From Rebecca billardiae RCC1528 (lineage: Eukaryota; Protista; Haptophyta), in the NCBI GenBank assembly GCA_965240325.2, contig OZ251248.1, positions 186,001-250,000 on the forward strand: DNA of 64,000 nt, written 5' to 3'. Position 1 is the first letter of the stretch. Every line of letters begins with the position of its first letter. The position numbers and the translations under genes were made by a program. Below, in pieces: positions 34,357 through 45,358 of this stretch. A model generated the notes under the pieces. That model had not been told where the DNA came from. It did not search any database and saw nothing but the letters and a program-made list of their open reading frames with translations.

Positions 34357-36490
34357 TGAGCTCACTCGTGCGTAACCACGGACCGCCGGGCATGGCCCAC
34401 CCAACCGGTCGCAGCGCCGCGGGCGCCGCGGACAGCGGATCCGCGCGGGCGACGACGCCCGCGCGCGAGCTCGGCCTCGAGCAGCTGGGCGACAACGCGA
34501 AGACCAACCAGATGCTCACTGGCGTGACGAACGAGTTTGCCAAGTTTGCAAGCTCCAATTCCAGCGTGAGCACCGACCTCTTCACCAGGACGGGCGGCAG
34601 CCTGAACCTGATGCCGGAGAGCACGTTCGTGATGCTTGCGCGGCAGCTGCCCTCGCTCGTCCAGATCACGAGCAAGATCCAGGAGAAGAACGAGCAGATT
34701 GCTATGGTGGACGCGGCGACGCGCTCCAAGGAGAAGGTGCTCCTCGTCCGCGCGAAGGTCGCGCAGCGAGAGCTCGACGGCAAGAACGAGCCGATGACAC
34801 CGGTACCACTCGCGACCGCGCCGGCGTTCCCGCCCGCGGCAGCGCCCTCTGACGCGTCTGCGGACGGCGACGACGCGAGCAGCGGGCCGGCGAGCGGTCT
34901 CGCGAGCGGTGAGGTGACGGTCAAGTTCGATGGCATGTCCGTCACCGCGGAGGAGCTGCACGAGCTCGTCGAGGCCAAGCTCGCGGAGATCACGGCCGAG
35001 AGGGACATCACCATCCGTAAGATTGCGATACTCGGAGAGGGCTTTGCGGGCGTCTCCGCGCTCGACAGCCCGAACCTGATCTACCAGAAGGTGTACGAGA
35101 ACTCCGCGGCCGTGCTACTGAAGCTGTTGAAGTCGACGCTGAACGCGGAAGCGCAGCAGTACGTGGACGCGTGCTCGCGGCGCAAGGGCATGGGCCCCTA
35201 CCCGAATGCTGCCGAGCAGCTGCAGGCGTGGTGGATTGAGCTGCGTGAGCTGCGCGACGAGGTGAGCGTCGACCACCTGATGGACATCATGGCCCCGTAC
35301 CTGAACACGGGGGAGAGCGAGCACAAGACATTCTCGGACCTGCCGTCGTACCTGGCGTACTCGAAGGAGAAGCAGCTCGTATTCGAGCGCCTGCGGGCGC
35401 CGGCCGAGGCGTTCGAGCTGGCCCGCGTGCTGCAGCCGCTGCGCAGCATGAAGGGCGACCTCTCGCTCAAGTTGAAGCTCGACAAGTTCCTCAAGATGCC
35501 GTACGTGGAGGTGACGAACGCGACGCTCGTCATGATGAACTCCGACCTCGCGAGCCACCCGCCGCGCGGCGTGATCACCGTGGGCAACGTGAAGGAGCGC
35601 CCGCCCCCGCGCCAGCCGCCGAAGCAGCCGGCGCACGAGGTGTCAGGCGCGACAGTGAAGAAGAACCAGCTCGTGACGACGCCGCGCGTCCCACCGGGGC
35701 TGAAGTGCGACGCGTGTACGGAGAACCACTTCTACGGCCCCGACTGCCCGCAGTTCAAGCGGGACGGCCCGCCGCCGCCATCGGTGCTCGCTGCGCGCGC
35801 GGAGCGCGCTGCTGCGCGCGCGAGGCGGGAGCAACCGGGCGCGGGCGCGCGCCGCGGCGCGGACCGCGGGGCCATCGTCGTGCCCGCGGGTGTCCCCAGC
35901 CGGAACATCGCACCGGTCGTCCGCGCGGTCCAGGCGATCGAGAACATTGACGAGGTGGAGCCCCACGACGAGGTGATCGGCGGGCACGTCGCCGCCGCCG
36001 TCGTCGAGGACAAGGGGGGCGCCGAGCCGCCCAACCGAGCGAACGGGCGCATTGACTCCGCGGCCGACCGGTCAGTCGGCGGGATGTGGATGGTCGACGC
36101 CGGTCTTGTGGAGAACTTGACGGCGCAGAACGGCGCGCTCATCGGCTTTGATGGCGGGGCCGCGGCCTCGTCGCTCAAGGGTGAGATCACCGCGCGCATG
36201 CTGAGCGTGGACGGCTCCGACTCGCAGCTGATCAAGTGCGAGATCTGGATTGCCGAGGGCGTGGAGACCATCCTGCTGTCCGCGGACGCGCTCGCGAGCG
36301 TCGGCGCGACGACCACCATCTCCAAGTGGCGGCAGTCGTCGTGCGACTTCACGGACGTCGGAGGCGGCTACATCAAGATCGGCTCGGACGCGCGCGTCAT
36401 CCTCGAGCTCCAGCCCGTCGAGGAGGCGGCCGCCGCCGCGGCGGGGCGCGTCGAGCCGGAGGCCGAACGCGCGCCCGCGCCCGCGCCCGT

Positions 36491-36522
<32 letters not shown>

Positions 36523-36548
36523 TCGGGCGCGCGCCGGGAAACGAGTAG
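34356..36548 (+). CDS. gag: Copia Gag-protease ORF
   Basis: 730 aa; zinc knuckle CDACTENHFYGPDC; aspartic protease motif RIDSAADRS and ILLSA. The ATG overlaps the last base of the LTR. Confidence 0.9.
36536..36542 (+). promoter_or_regulatory. Candidate -1 ribosomal frameshift slippery site G GGA AAC
   Basis: X XXY YYZ heptamer in the correct gag phase, one codon before the TAG; a -1 shift enters the pol frame; GC-rich stems follow. Confidence 0.75.
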
Positions 36549-39500
36549 GGCCCGAGCGCGCGGCGGCTGAGCGAGCTGCTGCCGGGCGTGCGCGCACGCC
36601 CGGTGACAAGGAGCTCGGCCTGTGGGCCGCCCGCTTGGGCACGACGAACAAGACTTTGCTGACTCGCACTTGGCGCGCCACCGCTGGCATGCCGGAGGCG
36701 ACGATGGCGCGCGCGCCGCTGGACACGCTGTCCGGCGCGCACATGAAACGACGGCCCTTTAACCGGCCCATGCCCCGCGCGACGCACCCGCGCGAGGTGA
36801 CGCACATGGACGTGGTGTCCGTGTCGAAGATTGACTTGCCGATCGGCGAGGCCGGGATCCCGGTCGGCATGAAGTACGCGCTGGTGTGTGTAGATGACTA
36901 CTCGCGCCGGATGAGCGTCTACTTCTGCAAGTTGAAGTCGCAGATACCTGACCTGATCGCGATGTATTTTCGCGAGATGGGAGCGCACGAGCTGTACGGC
37001 TCGCACATCGAGCTTGGACCTGGGTTCAAGCGATTCCACATCCACACCGACGGCGGCACCGAGCTGAACTCGGAGCGCGTGTCCGAGCTGCTGCTGCAGC
37101 TTGGCCTCGCCGCCAACGTGACGAGCGCGCCCGACACTCCCTCCTCGAATGGGGTGGCGGAGCACGCGATCCAGACTCTGGTGCGCGACACGATTGCGCG
37201 CCTTGCGATGACGGGCATGTCTGCCCAGCATTGGCACTATGCGATGCGCCACGCGTGCGCGAGCAGAAACCGCTTGGCGTCCAGGCGAATCATGCGCGAC
37301 GGCGCGCTGATATTCGTGACGCCCTACGAGCTCTTCTTTGGCAAGCCGCCGGACATGCGTCACGTGATCGTGTTCGGCGCCCCGTGCCGTGTGGTCCTGC
37401 AGGGGCTCGAGAAGCAGCGGCGGGGCAAGCTGGGCATGCCGACGGTGCGCGGCCGCGTCCTCGGTCACGGCATCGACGGCTCCCAGATCGACAAGACGTT
37501 CCGGCTGCTGCTGGGGTACGTCGTGCTGCTCGATGACGGGCGGGTGATTCACTCCAAGCACGTGTACATTGATGAGCGGTCGCTGGTCGAGGGGGGGCAC
37601 ACTCCGTTCGCGACCAGCGATGACAGTGCCGAGCCCGAGACTGAGCTGGGAGACGCCGCCGACGGCGAGCTCACCGGCGAGGGCGACGAGCATTTTGAGA
37701 TTGAGGACGGCGCGGCCGATGACGGCTGCGCTGCTGCTCATGACGACGGTGGCGCGGCGAGCGAAGCTGCGCGACCGAGCGCCGACGGCGATGACGCCGG
37801 AGGCGATGACGACGCACGAGCTGGTGAGTCCGCGGCGCCCGAGCTGCCGCGCGACTACGACCCGATGCGACGAGACCGAGCGAGGCGGAGCAGACCCGCC
37901 GCGCAGACGGTGCAGGCTGTGACCGAGGCAGCGTTCCAGGCAGCGGGCGAGGAACCTACCGAGGAGAACAGCTTCGAGGCATTCGCTGCGACGACGATCG
38001 CGCGGATGAATGGTGTGCCGATCACCATCCCCACGACGTGGGACGAGGCGATGAAGTCGCCCGAGGCCAAGCTCTGGATGCAGGCCTGCCACGACCACCT
38101 CGACGCGCACGGCGTGAGACACACGTTCTTCGAGGTGATTGTGCCGGACAACACGAGGACGATTCCTGTCAAGTGGGTGTTCGACGTGAAGACGCTTCCC
38201 GATGGCGAAGTGATCAAGTTCAAGGCGCGGCTGGTAACCCAGGGGTTCCGCCAGCGCGAGGGCATCGACTTCAATGAGGTGTTCGCCCCGACGATACGAC
38301 CAGAACAGCTGCGGCTGATGCTCGCGGTCGCGCTCAAGGCCAAAGGCGTCTCGATGACGGACGCGGCGAGCGCCAAGATCGTGGAGATGCGACCCGCCGA
38401 CGTGCGGCACGCATACCTGAACAGCGACCTGCCGGAGGGCGAGGAGGTGATGACACCGCTCCCGCCTGGCTACACCCCGAAGAGCTCGACGCCGCTCGGC
38501 TCGAAGGTGGTCGCGAAGTTTGTGAAGGCGCTCCCAGGCATGCGCCAGGCCGGGCGCGTGTGGTACCTGCACTTGCGTAAGTGTTTGCTCGAACATGGGT
38601 TCGAGCCGTGCCCGAGCGCGCCGTGCATCTACTCGAAGGCAGTCGATGGCGGCTACGTGTTCGTCGGTCACTTTGTCGACGATCTGCTGATGATGAACAT
38701 CTCGAAGGACAAGTCCGCGTTGGACGCGCTGATGACGGCGTTGTTGACGCACTACGAGATGCAGGGCGCGGACTGCCTGAGCAAGTTCCTTGGCGCCGAA
38801 TTTGAGACCACGGTGGACGGACTTTATACCCACCTGAATCAGTACATCGGTGATGTGTGCGAGCGCTTCCACCTGAGTGGAGAGCGCCACCCACCGACCC
38901 CCGAGTGCAGCGAGACGCGCGAGATCCCCCGCCCGCTGCAAGCCCTCCTGCTGCGCGCTGACCGCCAGCACTACCAGGAGATGACAGGTGCCCTCATGTA
39001 CTGCATGACGACGTGTCGCCCCGACATCGCGCACGCCGTGAACATGCTGGCACGCCGGATGTCCAATCCCCGGCTCTACGACTTGACCGCCGCGAAGCGC
39101 ACGCTCCGATACTTGCTCGGCACGCGTCGGCGCGGCATCCTCTTCCGGCACGCGACGCACGCACAACACCCTGATTTGGTGGCGTACGCGGACTCGGGCT
39201 GGGCGAACGATCGTGAAGAACGACGTTCTACGACGGGATACCTTGTTATGTACAACGGGGTCCCGATCTCGTGGCACAGCGGACTGCAGAGCGTGGTCGC
39301 GTTGTCTACGTGCGAGGCGGAGTACATCGCGCTGAGCGAGTGCTGCCGCGAGGTGATCTACCTGCGCGACCTGGTCACGTTTTTGAACGAGCCGGTCGTG
39401 GAGCCCACGACGGTGATCTACGAGGATAACCAGGGCACGATCGATTTGACGAACAACCCGGTGCACCACAAGCGCACCAAGCACATTGACGTGAAGTACC

Positions 39501-39667
39501 ATTTAACGCGGCGCGCGCAAGCCGACGGCGCCGTGCTGATCCAGAAGGTGCCGACCGACGACAACCGGTCCGACATCATGACCAAGGCTACCGCGACGAG
39601 TACTTTTCTGAAACACGTCGTGGCGATACTGCATGCTGTTCCACCACCTCCGCCGCCTTCGGCATGA
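36536..39667 (+). CDS. pol: Copia pol (integrase, reverse transcriptase, RNase H) in the -1 frame
   Basis: IN: THMDVV, VCVDDYSR, IHTDGGTE, NGVAE. RT: KARLVTQGFRQREGIDFNEVFAP, ADVRHAYLN, GHFVDDLL. RNase H: AYADSGWA, STCEAEY, YEDNQG, RTKHIDVKYH. Confidence 0.95.
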   Translation, partial: GKRVGPERAAAERAAAGRARTPGDKELGLWAARLGTTNKTLLTRTWRATAGMPEATMARAPLDTLSGAHMKRRPFNRPMPRATHPREVTHMDVVSVSKIDLPIGEAGIPVGMKYALVCVDDYSRRMSVYFCKLKSQIPDLIAMYFREMGAHELYGSHIELGPGFKRFHIHTDGGTELNSERVSELLLQLGLAANVTSAPDTPSSNGVAEHAIQTLVRDTIARLAMTGMSAQHWHYAMRHACASRNRLASRRIMRDGALIFVTPYELFFGKPPDMRHVIVFGAPCRVVLQGLEKQRRGKLGMPTVRGRVLGHGIDGSQIDKTFRLLLGYVVLLDDGRVIHSKHVYIDERSLVEGGHTPFATSDDSAEPETELGDAADGELTGEGDEHFEIEDGAADDGCAAAHDDGGAASEAARPSADGDDAGGDDDARAGESAAPELPRDYDPMRRDRARRSRPAAQTVQAVTEAAFQAAGEEPTEENSFEAFAATTIARMNGVPITIPTTWDEAMKSPEAKLWMQACHDHLDAHGVRHTFFEVIVPDNTRTIPVKWVFDVKTLPDGEVIKFKARLVTQGFRQREGIDFNEVFAPTIRPEQLRLMLAVALKAKGVSMTDAASAKIVEMRPADVRHAYLNSDLPEGEEVMTPLPPGYTPKSSTPLGSKVVAKFVKALPGMRQAGRVWYLHLRKCLLEHGFEPCPSAPCIYSKAVDGGYVFVGHFVDDLLMMNISKDKSALDALMTALLTHYEMQGADCLSKFLGAEFETTVDGLYTHLNQYIGDVCERFHLSGERHPPTPECSETREIPRPLQALLLRADRQHYQEMTGALMYCMTTCRPDIAHAVNMLARRMSNPRLYDLTAAKRTLRYLLGTRRRGILFRHATHAQHPDLVAYADSGWANDREERRSTTGYLVMYNGVPISWHSGLQSVVALSTCEAEYIALSECCREVIYLRDLVTFLNEPVVEPTTVIYEDNQGTIDLTNNPVHHKRTKHIDVKYHLTRRAQADGAVLIQKVPTDDNRSDIMTKATATSTFLKHVVAILHAVPPPPPPSA

Positions 39668-40576: not shown

Positions 40577-43500
40577 TCAGCGCTTGCGCGCGCAGAACGT
40601 GTAGTGCGTCGGCAGCAGACACGTGTACGGCACGCGCGACACCGTCTCCTTGTACCACACGACCTCGAGGCGCTCGCAGCCGTGCAGCCAGTCGACGTGC
40701 GCGCGGTCAAAGTAGACACCGTCGTTGGCGAACCACCACTTGTACACGGCCTGCGCGGGGCCCATGCGCTTTCGGGTCGTGAAGTCGACGAGGCCGAGGT
40801 ACCCTGCGGCCGGGCGGCGCGCGCGCGCGTGCGTGTGTGCGTGCGTGTGTGTGCGTGGCGGGCGCGGAGGGGCGTGCGGTGCGGTGCGGTGAGTGAGCGT
40901 GGGCCCACGCGCGCACGCGCGCCCACGCCGCCGCAGCGGCGCCACCAAACGCGCGCGCCCACGCCGCGCGTGGGCGCTGCGCCGAGGCACCCCCGCGCCC
41001 TCGCCCTCGAGTCGCGCGTGCGCAGCGCATGGGCGGGGCAGCGCACACCCCCTGGCTTGGTGAGCTTGACCATCGTCTCCAGCGCCTGCTTCCACGGCGG
41101 GATCATCGTGAGGCAGTAGGAGCAGGTCACCTGCACGCGCACGCGCGCGCGCGCCGAGAGTGAGGGGGGCGGGAGGAGGTGGGGTGCGGGTGTGTGAGAA
41201 GCGGGTGTCGGCGGCCGGTGCGGCCGAGCGGTCGGCGCGGAGGCGGCACGTGGCGCAGCGAGCGCGGCTGCTGCTGTGCGCGCGCGGCACCGGCGGCCCT
41301 GCCGCGCACCCAGCACAGCACGGCCGCACTCGGCTGCACACGCGCAGCCGCGCGGCCAGCCGCCCACCCACGCCCGCGGCGCGCCGGCGCGTCCGCAAGT
41401 GCGCGCGCGCGCGCGCGAATGGAGCCGCAATCTCCGACCGCAGAGTGCGGCCCCCGGCCACGCACCATGTCCGCGCCGCCCTGCGGCAGCTGCGCGAGCA
41501 CCGCGGGGTCGTTCACGTCGCCCTCGATGCAAGTCACCTGTCCGCCGAGGCCGAGCGCCTCCACTCGCTCCTTCGCCATCTCGAGCAGAGCGTCGGAGAG
41601 GTCGAGCAGGTACACGCGTGTGCCTGCGCAGGCACGGGCACAGACGCGGAGAATTCAAAGGAAGAATTCAAAGGAACGTCGACAAGGGAAAGAATGGGCG
41701 CAGGGGCGCAGGGGCGCAGGTTGGGGGTGCGGAGTGGGCGAGGGTGGGCGCCGCGGACGGCGGCGGGCGGGCGGCAGGCGGCGGCGGGGCGAGCGGCGCG
41801 GCGCAGCGCACGCGCACGCACTGCCCGCACCGCACCGCGCGCGCGGCTGCGGCGAGTGAGCGCCGCGCGCGCAACCGCGCGCGAGGCGCGCCCGCGCGCG
41901 CACCGCAGGCCTTGATGTGCCCGAGCACGAACTCAACGTCTCGCGCGGTGCCGCAGCCGACCGACACCCAGCTCTGCGGATTTCTGACCCACGGCATGAC
42001 GTACTGCATGAACACGTCGCGGTCGGGGAGCAGCGCCTCGCGGAAGCCATCGTACCGCCGGCCCTGCGACTTGTAGAACTTGCGCACGTCGCGCGGCAGG
42101 CCTAGCGCGCCCGTCACTCCGTACGCACCCATCGTCGCCATCACCTGCGCGCGCGCGCCGCGCCGGGCCGGAGCAGGGAGCGCACGGCAGCGCGCGCGGC
42201 GAGGCGCGCGTTCAGAAGCGCAGGGTGAGCCACGCGCACGCGCGCCCCGAGCAGGGGCGCAGCGCGCGCGCCGCGGCCGAGGCGGGTGAGGCTGAGGGTA
42301 TAGGGTGAGGGTGAGGCGAGCGCCACACACGCACCATCAGGTCGTCCCCGAACGAGTTGGCCATGGTGGCGCCCGTGCCGACGCACAGCAACTTGGTCGG
42401 GTCGTACGCGCGGTCGAGCGTCGTCCAGTACTGCGAGAGGTACCAGCCCACGCGGTCGTAGTCCGGTACGAGGATGGGCGCACAGCCGGACTCGTCCCGC
42501 AGGTGGGTGAGCACGGCCGAGTGCACCTCGGGCGCGAACGAGCGCCAGAAGACCCGCGCCTGGGCGCGGGCGCGGGCAGCGGGGCCGAGGCGCGGCGGGG
42601 CGGGGGGCAGGCCACGCCGGGGGGCACCGTGCCAGCCGTGCACGCGCGCGAGCGTGCGGACGCGTGAGCGGAGAGCTGCGGGGCTGGGCGGCGCGCAGGG
42701 GCGCGCCCGCGCGCCCACTCGGCGCGCCGGCCGCTCCGCGGCAGCGCGCGCGCGCCCCTCCGCAGCAGCGCACGCGCAGTAGCGCACGCGCGTTTGAGGG
42801 CACGGAGCGGCTGGGCACACACGAGTCACCCCACGCGCGCCCCTCCGCACACGCGCGGGCAGGCGCGTGCGCGGGCGGGCGAGGGCTCGGGGGAAGGGCG
42901 CGCACCTTGGGCCGGTCCATGCACGCAATCAGCCGGCCGATGTTCTCCCCGACCATCGACTCGGGCATCCAATCCATCGAATCAAGGAGCGACGCAACCG
43001 TCACCTCGCCCTTGCCCAGGTTCTCGGCGCCCTCCGCCCACGTGCCGTGGAACGGGCGCACGATGTCCACGCGCTGCTTCAGCGTGGCGAACGAGCCCTC
43101 CTCGAGGTAGCGCGGGCAGCACTTACGCGAGAACCGACCCACCACGTACCCGTAGTAAAAGTAGTTGTTCTTGAAATGCTTGTTCGGCCACATGCGCTCC
43201 GACATCACCTCGACCAGCCGGTCGGCGAAGAGCTGCGCGCAGCCGACGCGGCGCGGGGCGGCGGCGGCGGCGGCAGCGGCGCGCGCGGCGCGCGCGCGCG
43301 CGGGCGGCGGCGCGGCGGCAGGTCGGGCGGAGGTGGGGGCGACGGTCAGCGAGGGCCCCGCGTGCGCGCCCGCGTGCGCGCGGGCGCGCTCGGGGAGCCC
43401 GGCGCGGCGCGGCCGCCTGAGCTCTCCGCCGCGCGTCCGCCGGGGCGCGCGAGACTGGGCGCGGAGGCGCGGCGGAGGCGCGGCGGAGGCGCGACGGAGG

Positions 43501-45358
43501 CGCGGCGGACGCGCGGCGGACGCGCGGCGCGGCGGACGCGCGGCGCGGCGGACGCGCGGCGCGGGCGGACGCGCGGCGCGGGCGGACGCGCGGCGCGGGC
43601 GGACGCGCGGCGCGGCGGACGCGCGGCGCGGGCGGACGCGCGGCGCACCTCTGGGCGCTCTGCGAGCAGGTTGAGCTGCTCGAGCGGCACGCCGCCGAGC
43701 GGCGCGAGCCACGACCACAGCCCCGGGTGCCGGACCACGGCGCACACCAGCTTGAAGCCCAGCGAGGTCGTCAGTCCGGACGGGGGCCCCTCGCCCGTCT
43801 CAGCCGCCTGCCGCGCAGACAGCGGGCGCAGCGCGCAACGCGACGAGCGCGCGCAACGAGCGCGCGCGCGACGCGACGCGAGAGCACGCGCCGAGCGAGG
43901 GACGGCGCCGGGCGGCGCGGGCGGGCGGGCGAGGCGTGAGCGCCGCGCACGCGCCTCGCACGCGCCTCGCCCGCGCGGCCCACCGCCCGCCGCGCCCGCC
44001 CGCGCGCGGCCTCCCGCGCCGCCGCGCGCGCGCCGCACCCGCTCCATGTGTGTCCGCGCGCCCGTGAGCAGGATGATGGGCTGCAGCAGCCGCGCCATCA
44101 GCCCGGACGCGCCGGCAAACATGAGGTTGTTCTTGATGATCGAGCCGTTCGCGTCCCAGAACTCGGCGGCCTCAGCCGAGAGGTGCGCGCGCAGCTTGGG
44201 CAGGTACACGGCCGTGAACACCTCGTAGTCCGACTCGCCGAACAGCGCGAAGAACTCGTCGTACGTGCAGGTGCGGATGGCGGCGAGCTTGAGCTCGAGC
44301 AGCGCGAGCTGCGCGCCGTTCATGTCGACGGCGATGACCTTCTTCGGGCCCTCGAGGACGTAGTCGAGCACGTTGCACCCCGCCGACGAGATCGTCAGCA
44401 CCACGTCCTCCGGCCCGCACTTGAGCACGCGGTGGTCGATCGCCGGGTCCTCCCACGAGATGTTGTAAATAATCTGCTTCTTGCCGATCGCCGACATGAT
44501 GAAGTTCTGCGTGTACACGTCGTGCACGATGCAGCAGAGCTCCCACACGCAGTACGCGCAGGTGAGCACGTGCACGAGCGCCGCGCGCGTGTCGCCCACC
44601 TCGCGCAGCACGCCGATCCGCGAGACCGCGAGGCTGACGTGCGAGGCCGCCTGCACGCCGATCAGTAGCAGGAACGTGTAGATCTTCGCGTTGAGCGGCA
44701 GCTTGCGCTTCTCGGTGCTCGAGCGCATGAGGTAGCCGCGCACCCACGACTGGAAGGTGACGAGGTGCCAGCGCAGCAGCACCACGCCCGAGGCGAACAC
44801 CAGCTTGGAGTACGGCGCCGCCGCGTAGATGAGCTGCGTGTGGAAGATCACGCGCGTCACAAAGTACAGCAGGCCAAACAGCAGCGACGGCTTGCGCTTG
44901 TTCTGCACCTCGAAGACGGAGAGGATGATGATGGGCAGCTCCTCGACGAGCGCGACCGCGAACAGCCCCGTCATCCGGCGGTACAGCAGCACGGCGCAGA
45001 TCGCCACGTACAGGAAGTGGTGCATCCAGCCGTCGGTGTACCCGATCGACGACTCGTAGTACGCCGCGCCGAGCGCGAGGTCCATGATGCAGTAGCCGAT
45101 GAAGAAGAGCGCGATGAAGCGCGAGAGCTCGTTCTCGTTCATGATCGACGCCTCGATCCCGTCGCGCAGCACGCCGCGGAAGAAGAAGACGCCCGTCGTC
45201 GACGTCGCGGCCGACGAGTAGAGCGTGAGGTACCACGCGCGGTTGCCGATCCGCAGCGCGGAGAGCAGCGCGAAGAAGACGCTGCACGCGGCCATGTTGG
45301 CGGCGAGGAGCATGAGCTCGCTCCTCACCTGGTCGTCCAGCGCGTCCATCACGCCCAT
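40577..45358 (-). CDS. Betaine lipid synthase-like fusion: TLC membrane domain + BtaA (DUF3419) + BtaB-type SAM methyltransferase, 8 exons
   Basis: Exons 45358-44039, 43807-43649, 43232-42906, 42559-42335, 42144-41904, 41623-41466, 41130-41049, 40803-40577 (912 aa). TLC: GYCIMDL, WMHH, EELP, YFVTRV. BtaA: YNISWEDPAID, LTISSAGCNVLDY, AVDMN, NNYFY, LLDSMDWM, VFWRS. BtaB: FYKSQGRRYDGFRE, VGCGT, SYCLTMIPPW, GLVDF, WFANDGV. Confidence 0.88.
43470..43648. repeat. GC-rich minisatellite at the 5' end of intron 2 of the Bta gene
   Basis: Repeated gcggcggacgcgc/gcgggcggacgcgc units. Confidence 0.7.

Follow-up and report, generated by a model that had tools for sequence, protein, structure and literature searches.

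A TLC-like membrane domain fused to a type A betaine lipid synthase in the haptophyte Rebecca billardiae is shared by many marine algae and may be an acyltransferase

The locus considered here raises the question of why a betaine lipid synthase should begin with a membrane domain, and what that domain might do. The gene lies on the minus strand at 45358-40577 of the window (the whole stretch of DNA analysed, 64,000 nucleotides of contig OZ251248.1 of Rebecca billardiae RCC1528, to which all coordinates below refer). A sequence-only reading had described its product as a TLC-like domain joined to a BtaA-like and a BtaB-like part, and had proposed a three-activity enzyme coupling acyl transfer or remodelling with head-group synthesis. 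In oceans poor in phosphorus, betaine lipids stand in for phospholipids, and in marine algae a large share of the long-chain omega-3 fatty acid is bound in them; TLC proteins were shown to be lysolipid acyltransferases only in 2025-2026. By sequence comparison, this very GC-rich, Pavlovales-like haptophyte has here its orthologue of a three-domain betaine lipid synthase of type A that is widespread. The reading that best accommodates the sequence and a predicted structural model as a whole, and that is on balance favoured here, is that a TLC acyltransferase remodelling the acyl chains of betaine lipids has been fused to head-group synthesis.

The gene was mapped by tblastn with two proteins, the 916-residue orthologue P0001 and KAG8460119.1 of Diacronema lutheri (P0022, 919 residues), both of which are collinear with it from residue 12 to the final residue at 60-86% identity per segment. 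A single gene of 8 exons resulted, summing to 2739 nt (912 codons and TGA), with canonical sites at each tblastn segment border (7/7 introns GT-AG). Searches and the structural model were made exon by exon, and P0001 stood in for the full-length protein. The fusion of the TLC-like domain with BtaA is real, being neither a splicing nor an annotation artefact. As the sequence-only reading had it, with coordinates that proved exact (45358-44039), one stop-free exon holds the membrane domain together with the first part of BtaA, and therefore splicing cannot account for their union. The frame of this first exon is uninterrupted from the ATG at 45358 to the GT donor at 44038-44037, shares 79% identity over residues 12-444 with both P0001 and P0022, and contains both a match to the Pfam TLC family (residues 37-200) and one to DUF3419 (residues 293-439).

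Two genes merged by read-through, or a translation start downstream of the membrane domain, could be imagined, given that no RNA run is listed for this genome and that no stop interrupts the frame in the 99 codons before the ATG. Similarity to the genomic open reading frame (ORF) of a relative starts exactly at the proposed methionine and none is found upstream of it. P0001 is encoded by an uninterrupted ORF of 2751 nt, found on three contigs assembled independently, each 3.2-3.3 kb long, in which a short leader precedes the ORF and some 450-490 nt follow it; these contigs look like mRNA because the ORF is uninterrupted where the window gene has seven introns. Annotated proteins with this layout exist in Diacronema lutheri, in Ostreococcus tauri (XP_022841223.1, with 905 residues) and in Micromonas pusilla (C1N6P3, with 917), the architecture recurs in dozens of other lineages, and the TLC-like domain is 48% identical to Mamiellales proteins. 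The shared exon and the conserved architecture rule out the merging of genes for all practical purposes, leaving an artefact of either kind exceedingly improbable, and a real three-domain protein with a TLC fold is very likely.

The N-terminal domain is very likely a divergent member of the TLC superfamily. Its match to PF03798 (E 0.006, 16.9 bits, or 16.9-18.1 bits across searches) is marginal, and no exon matches NCBIfam. An AlphaFold model of the domain built on 17 homologues (mean predicted local distance difference test score 75, predicted template modelling score 0.71) has the TLC helical-barrel fold. When 48,161 representative chains were compared with the model, the top match was human CerS6 (8qz6_A) with a borderline Z of 14.0 and a root-mean-square deviation of 2.9 Å over 200 residues, and the yeast ceramide synthases 8qtr_B and 8izd_A came next with Z 13.6 and 13.3, respectively; each of these three alignments spans model residues 1-215, and the next matches, TMEM120A and ELOVL7, are of the same barrel type. 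An ESM Atlas search led to a TLCD5 cluster (TM 0.59/0.65 over 212 residues). An exhaustive profile search with the domain recovered 793 proteins at E<=0.001, mostly stand-alone proteins of about 250 residues. Among 63 relatives, fused and stand-alone together, 27 matched PF03798 at E<=0.01, the best of them with 1e-7, while no other family was matched by more than one of them; P0148 passes the PF03798 gathering score with 25.9 bits, and the fused relatives P0307 and P0310 have precomputed PF03798 matches. It is because the model matches, the TLCD5 cluster, the relatives' PF03798 matches and the precomputed matches agree that the domain is assigned to TLC. The original identification holds for the fold and for the family to which the domain belongs, although the domain's own Pfam score falls below the cut-off.

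The motif D..HH..E..R that had been picked out from the letters of the sequence is real. In an alignment of the 63 fused and stand-alone sequences only five columns are invariant, namely D93, H113, H114, E140 and R169, and a further five are nearly so (G110, Y117, P142, H173 and H198). Across larger sets, the five residues are kept in 149-153 of 154 fused and 122-123 of 123 stand-alone sequences. By their order and spacing they make up the set of an acidic residue, a histidine pair, a glutamate and an arginine that characterizes the active sites of TLCD acyltransferases. The active site of CLN8 consists of E117, H138, H139, E167 and R204, described as "conserved across the TLCD acyltransferases" (PMC13661276); TLCD1 requires D98, H117 and E145 and forms an acyl-H117 intermediate (PMC11838012); and H211 of CerS6 bears the acyl intermediate (PMC11919693). 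The spacing is D-20-HH-27-E-29-R in the window protein, 19 and 28 in TLCD1, and 21, 29 and 37 in CLN8, where experiments on both enzymes have shown the residues to be needed. The residue before the invariant glutamate, E139 (44942-44944), is Glu in 153 of 154 fused proteins and mostly L, E or M in the stand-alone relatives; it marks the fused clade and could relate to the acceptor used there.

Substitutions within the set were also seen: S replaces H113 in three of the 154 fused sequences, and A replaces E140 in three. These sequences may represent one lineage in which TLC catalysis has been lost. Where the final helix of the barrel ends, residues 202-212 (44723-44755, minus strand) read FQSWVRGYLMR, which fits the IQ consensus FQxxxRGxxxR. 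Weak Pfam IQ matches (E about 0.007-0.011) were obtained for 10 of 17 Pavlovales and Mamiellales homologues, and R212 of this stretch is kept in 89 of 154 fused proteins; the likeness to an IQ motif may be due to chance, or the stretch may have a regulatory function.

The TLC-like domain is followed by a linker found only in fused forms, since the profile match of the stand-alone relatives stops at about position 225. The linker ends in an invariant DVYTQNFIM just ahead of the Pfam BtaA region. BtaA itself (DUF3419, PF11899) is matched in exon 1 with E 2e-49, collinear with a second match in exon 3. A BtaB-like S-adenosylmethionine (SAM) methyltransferase occupies exons 5-8, whose identity to P0001 and P0022 is 60-86%, and ends at the TGA at 40579-40577, and so the C-terminal position originally given to it is correct. 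Single BtaB exons score weakly because the domain is split over exons 5-8; P0001 has full precomputed methyltransferase Pfam matches, and the columns of the motif GCGTARD are invariant in alignment A2.

The order of exons on the minus strand places BtaA N-terminal to BtaB, as in type A enzymes. This order had been put forward as a novelty, a claim that has to be dropped, for it has been published as the type A or "marine" configuration (PMC8752610, PMC10685587). The type A BTA1 proteins of Nannochloropsis/Microchloropsis, Phaeodactylum and O. tauri (ostta15g02860) have the same order of DUF3419/BtaA and BtaB and the same conserved motifs, and the window protein at full length is 54-56% identical to Mamiellales proteins and 79% identical to KAG8460119.1 of Diacronema lutheri. 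Published descriptions of type A BTA1 mention two domains (PMC10685587, PMC8752610, PMC7407893), whereas here there is a third, the N-terminal TLC-like domain of about 215 residues, together with a two-helix linker; the O. tauri orthologue, a phosphate-starvation protein, was likewise described with two domains only (PMC7407893). Type B BTA1 of Chlamydomonas, Chlorella and fungi, and the bacterial pair BtaA and BtaB, comprise the same two modules for synthesis of the phosphorus-free membrane lipid diacylglyceryl-N,N,N-trimethylhomoserine (DGTS), but in the opposite order or as separate proteins. Within the set recovered, the single fungal representative of type B (P0348) is without a TLC domain, as are P0330 and P0344, two short type A proteins of probably bacterial origin.

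Nor is the fusion with a TLC domain peculiar to this locus. Three-part proteins of about 900-1000 residues were found in Pavlovales, Mamiellales, Cymbomonas and Emiliania, and also in the pelagophyte Chrysophaeum, the dictyochophytes Dictyocha and Pseudopedinella, the chlorarachniophyte Amorphochlora and the ichthyosporean Chromosphaera. Nearly all full-length eukaryotic type A proteins of the set recovered carry the TLC-like domain; the few type A proteins that do not are truncated calls or short, bacterial-looking proteins of 630-640 residues. In a quick maximum-likelihood tree of 146 N-terminal domains, 42 of them fused, all but one of the fused domains (41) fall into a single clade together with one probable fragment (Shimodaira-Hasegawa-like approximate likelihood ratio test, SH-aLRT, 99), the exception being one long-branch sequence. 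This pattern fits a single fusion event, and it looks as if the fusion arose once and the domain has been kept since across very distant lineages. The domain of the window protein groups with those of Cymbomonas and Mamiellales (SH-aLRT 99) and not with that of Emiliania. The layout is thus common to many marine algae and has apparently not been described until now.

Several further observations concern the relatives. The Emiliania-type domain (the cluster of P0286) falls in the other major fused clade, which includes named dictyochophyte sequences; this separate placement means that two haptophyte classes hold different versions of the domain, through either ancient paralogy or transfer. The Emiliania huxleyi protein XP_005763111.1 (P0285) has 1565 residues, many more than its relatives, and bears the name of an N-acetyltransferase-domain protein; two genes have probably been merged in this model. 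The closest stand-alone relatives of the domain include, by sequence, proteins of Mucoromycota fungi (Choanephora and Cunninghamella) and, by feature search, clusters made up mainly of proteins from giant viruses (Nucleocytoviricota) and from haptophytes.

What the domain might do is suggested by the characterized TLC proteins that it resembles. TLCD1 and FLD-1, which are lysophosphatidylethanolamine (LPE) acyltransferases, share with it a predicted TLC barrel in which D93, H113 and E140 take the places of D98, H117 and E145 (PMC11838012), but the window domain is marginal in sequence similarity, is fused to a head-group synthase and has the additional conserved residues H173 and H198. CLN8, a glycerophosphoglycerol/lysophosphatidylglycerol acyltransferase, matches all five residues by order (E117/H138/H139/E167/R204 for D93/H113/H114/E140/R169; PMC13661276), but is a stand-alone animal protein of the endoplasmic reticulum (ER). 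The ceramide synthases (CerS6 and yeast Lag1/Lac1) are the best structural matches and have their histidine pair on the equivalent helix, but the window domain is without their Hox-like domain, and E139-E140 replace the pair Asp239/Asp242 of CerS6 (PMC11919693). A C-terminal DxRSDxE motif is specific to ceramide synthases (PMC8789539), and a motif search of exon 1 did not find it. The domain was accordingly rejected as a ceramide synthase, both DxRSDxE and the Lag1p Asp pair being absent.

In the reading favoured here, BtaA and BtaB would make DGTS from diacylglycerol and SAM, as expected by homology to characterized BTA1. The TLC domain would take an acyl group from acyl-CoA onto H113, forming an acyl-histidine intermediate as in TLCD1, CLN8 and CerS6, and would pass it on, most likely to a betaine lipid made by the adjacent BtaA/BtaB, in its lyso or deacylated form. 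If the barrel has the topology of CerS6, the two linker helices would bring the polypeptide back to the cytosolic side of the membrane, so that BtaA and BtaB would lie on the side on which TLC barrels open. One ER-anchored protein could then combine the building of the head group with acyl editing of the betaine lipid in the manner of a Lands cycle. The parts of this scheme are not equally secure. From the conserved residues and the model, the domain is probably a catalytically active acyltransferase, whereas a betaine lipid as its acceptor can be suggested only tentatively. The three-activity enzyme of the sequence-only reading is therefore reasonable, because of the TLC fold and the intact acyltransferase-type residue set that accompany the fusion. 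It is rather unlikely, though worth stating, that the domain is the missing acyltransferase of acyl editing that acts on lyso-DGTS, on lyso-diacylglyceryl-hydroxymethyl-N,N,N-trimethyl-beta-alanine (lyso-DGTA) or on glyceryl-betaine, fused since an early single event and shared by much of the marine eukaryotic phytoplankton. In a bolder form of the proposal, the domain might take part in the conversion of DGTS to DGTA.

Several results weigh against an active TLC acyltransferase at this locus. The PF03798 score of the window protein, at 16.9-18.1 bits, is below the gathering score of 24.6 bits, and profile searches of PDB sequences with alignments A1 and A3 gave no match. Foldseek found no significant match in the PDB, a yeast ceramide synthase at rank 16 (probability 0.80) being the only TLC-type hit. 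The structural matches with Z near 14 are insufficient alone, because values of this size can arise by chance among helical bundles. The equivalence of residues to those of TLCD1 and CLN8 was derived from order, spacing and Pfam ranges and not from superposition, and the genome has, as noted, no listed RNA run. Moreover, the type A BTA1 proteins of Microchloropsis and Phaeodactylum expressed in tobacco leaves yielded DGTS with no extra product reported (10.1101/2024.07.11.603045), a result that bears on the TLC domain only if these two proteins carry one; neither protein was retrieved here by word searches or with the peptides encoded by the published primers.

The TLC-like domain might instead serve only as a membrane anchor, scaffold or lipid-presenting module for BtaA/BtaB, placing them at the ER or handing over diacylglycerol, with no acyl transfer of its own. 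Head groups can be made without a TLC domain, as bacterial BtaA/BtaB and the short type A proteins P0330 and P0344 demonstrate, certain TLC proteins (TRAMs) have been identified as sphingolipid-binding and not as enzymes (PMC8665359), and the replacements of H113 and E140 in three of 154 fused sequences show that these residues can be lost. But an anchor has no need of five invariant charged or polar residues within its helices, conserved in fused proteins of organisms as far apart as haptophytes and an ichthyosporean as well as in 122-123 of 123 stand-alone relatives, and these are the residues that are catalytic in TLCD1 and CLN8 (PMC11838012, PMC13661276); a non-catalytic role is for these reasons unlikely.

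Other chemistry has also to be weighed. The domain could belong to the path from DGTS to DGTA, or to diacylglyceryl-carboxyhydroxymethylcholine (DGCC), for example through the reacylation that labelling studies tie to the conversion. Two lineages that bear the fusion are reported makers of DGTA, O. tauri exclusively so (PMC7407893) and Pavlova together with DGCC (PMC8379373), and the searchable literature names no DGTA-forming enzyme, which PMC10685587 calls unknown. Such a role is nonetheless improbable, in that the domain occurs in nearly every full-length eukaryotic type A protein recovered, from lineages with differing betaine lipids, the product of Phaeodactylum BTA1 in tobacco is called DGTS by its authors (10.1101/2024.07.11.603045), and a TLC acyltransferase leaves the rearrangement of the head-group carboxyl unexplained. 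It is more doubtful yet that the domain acylates some other acceptor, whether converting monoacylglycerol to diacylglycerol or N-acylating the amine of diacylglyceryl-homoserine after the fashion of a ceramide synthase. TLC enzymes do vary in their acceptors, which include amines (CerS6), the LPE hydroxyl and thiamine (TLCD1) and glycerophosphoglycerol (CLN8) (PMC11919693, PMC11838012, PMC13661276), and ceramide synthases head the structural matches, but nothing in the sequence points to monoacylglycerol or diacylglyceryl-homoserine, DxRSDxE is absent, and N-acylation would compete with the fused methyltransferase.

In labelling studies betaine lipids behave as hubs of acyl editing (PMC9892843), and no report was found that names an acyltransferase re-acylating them. 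No paper was found that links BTA1 or betaine lipid synthase with a TLC domain, LAG1 or CLN8, within a searchable literature that is incomplete, and the TLCD1 paper makes no mention of algae or betaine lipids. Microchloropsis and Phaeodactylum BTA1 were fused to a Sec63 ER anchor for targeting to the ER (10.1101/2024.07.11.603045), which suggests that no intrinsic membrane domain was recognized in them. The TLC-BTA1 fusion of haptophytes, prasinophytes, stramenopiles and rhizarians, with its full set of catalytic residues, is a concrete candidate for the re-acylation step, and its existence implies that a third of the protein has been overlooked in heterologous work on type A BTA1 and in phylogenies built on two domains. 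The parts of the window gene are listed in Table 1.

Table 1. Exons, domains and candidate catalytic codons of the three-domain betaine lipid synthase gene (window coordinates).
Feature	Position	Strand	Description
TLC-like membrane domain	44714..45358	-	residues 1-215, seven predicted helices
codon D93	45080..45082	-	invariant; position of TLCD1 D98, CLN8 E117 (PMC11838012, PMC13661276)
codons H113-H114	45017..45022	-	invariant; position of CerS6 H211/H212, TLCD1 H117, CLN8 H138/H139 (PMC11919693, PMC11838012, PMC13661276)
codons E139-E140	44939..44944	-	E140 invariant, position of TLCD1 E145, CLN8 E167; E139 marks fused forms
codon R169	44852..44854	-	invariant; position of CLN8 R204 (PMC13661276)
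linker	44489..44701	-	residues 220-290, a pair of long hydrophobic helices (222-254 and 257-299 in the model; hydropathy peaks)
exon 1	44039..45358	-	440 codons in one open frame: ATG, TLC-like domain, two-helix linker, BtaA residues 1-148
exon 2	43649..43807	-	53 codons, BtaA; 69-75% identity to P0001/P0022; AG/GT borders
exon 3	42906..43232	-	109 codons, BtaA; Pfam DUF3419 E 6.6e-19, profile positions 227-324
exon 4	42335..42559	-	75 codons, BtaA end and linker to BtaB; 76% identity to P0001
exon 5	41904..42144	-	241 nt, BtaB start, SAM motif I (VSVGCGTARD); 78% identity to P0001
exon 6	41466..41623	-	158 nt, BtaB methyltransferase core; weak Methyltransf_25 match, E 0.0012 (exon alone)
exon 7	41049..41130	-	82 nt, BtaB; 79-86% identity to P0001/P0022
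exon 8	40577..40803	-	227 nt, BtaB C-terminus; TGA stop 40579-40577

The exons have a G+C content of 63-75% and the introns one of 78-91%, and the introns are dense in short tandem repeats. The intron at 43233-43648 contains about 8-10 copies of a 17-nt unit at 43480-43646. Repeats of this kind, read in frame, give rise to long pseudo-ORFs rich in Arg, Ala and Pro, which inflate lists of ORFs. Beyond the gene, an ORF of 1143 codons on the plus strand (36236-39667) resembles, by eye, a Ty1/copia-type polyprotein with integrase-like and reverse-transcriptase-like stretches; it ends about 900 bp from the 3′ end of the BTA1 gene.

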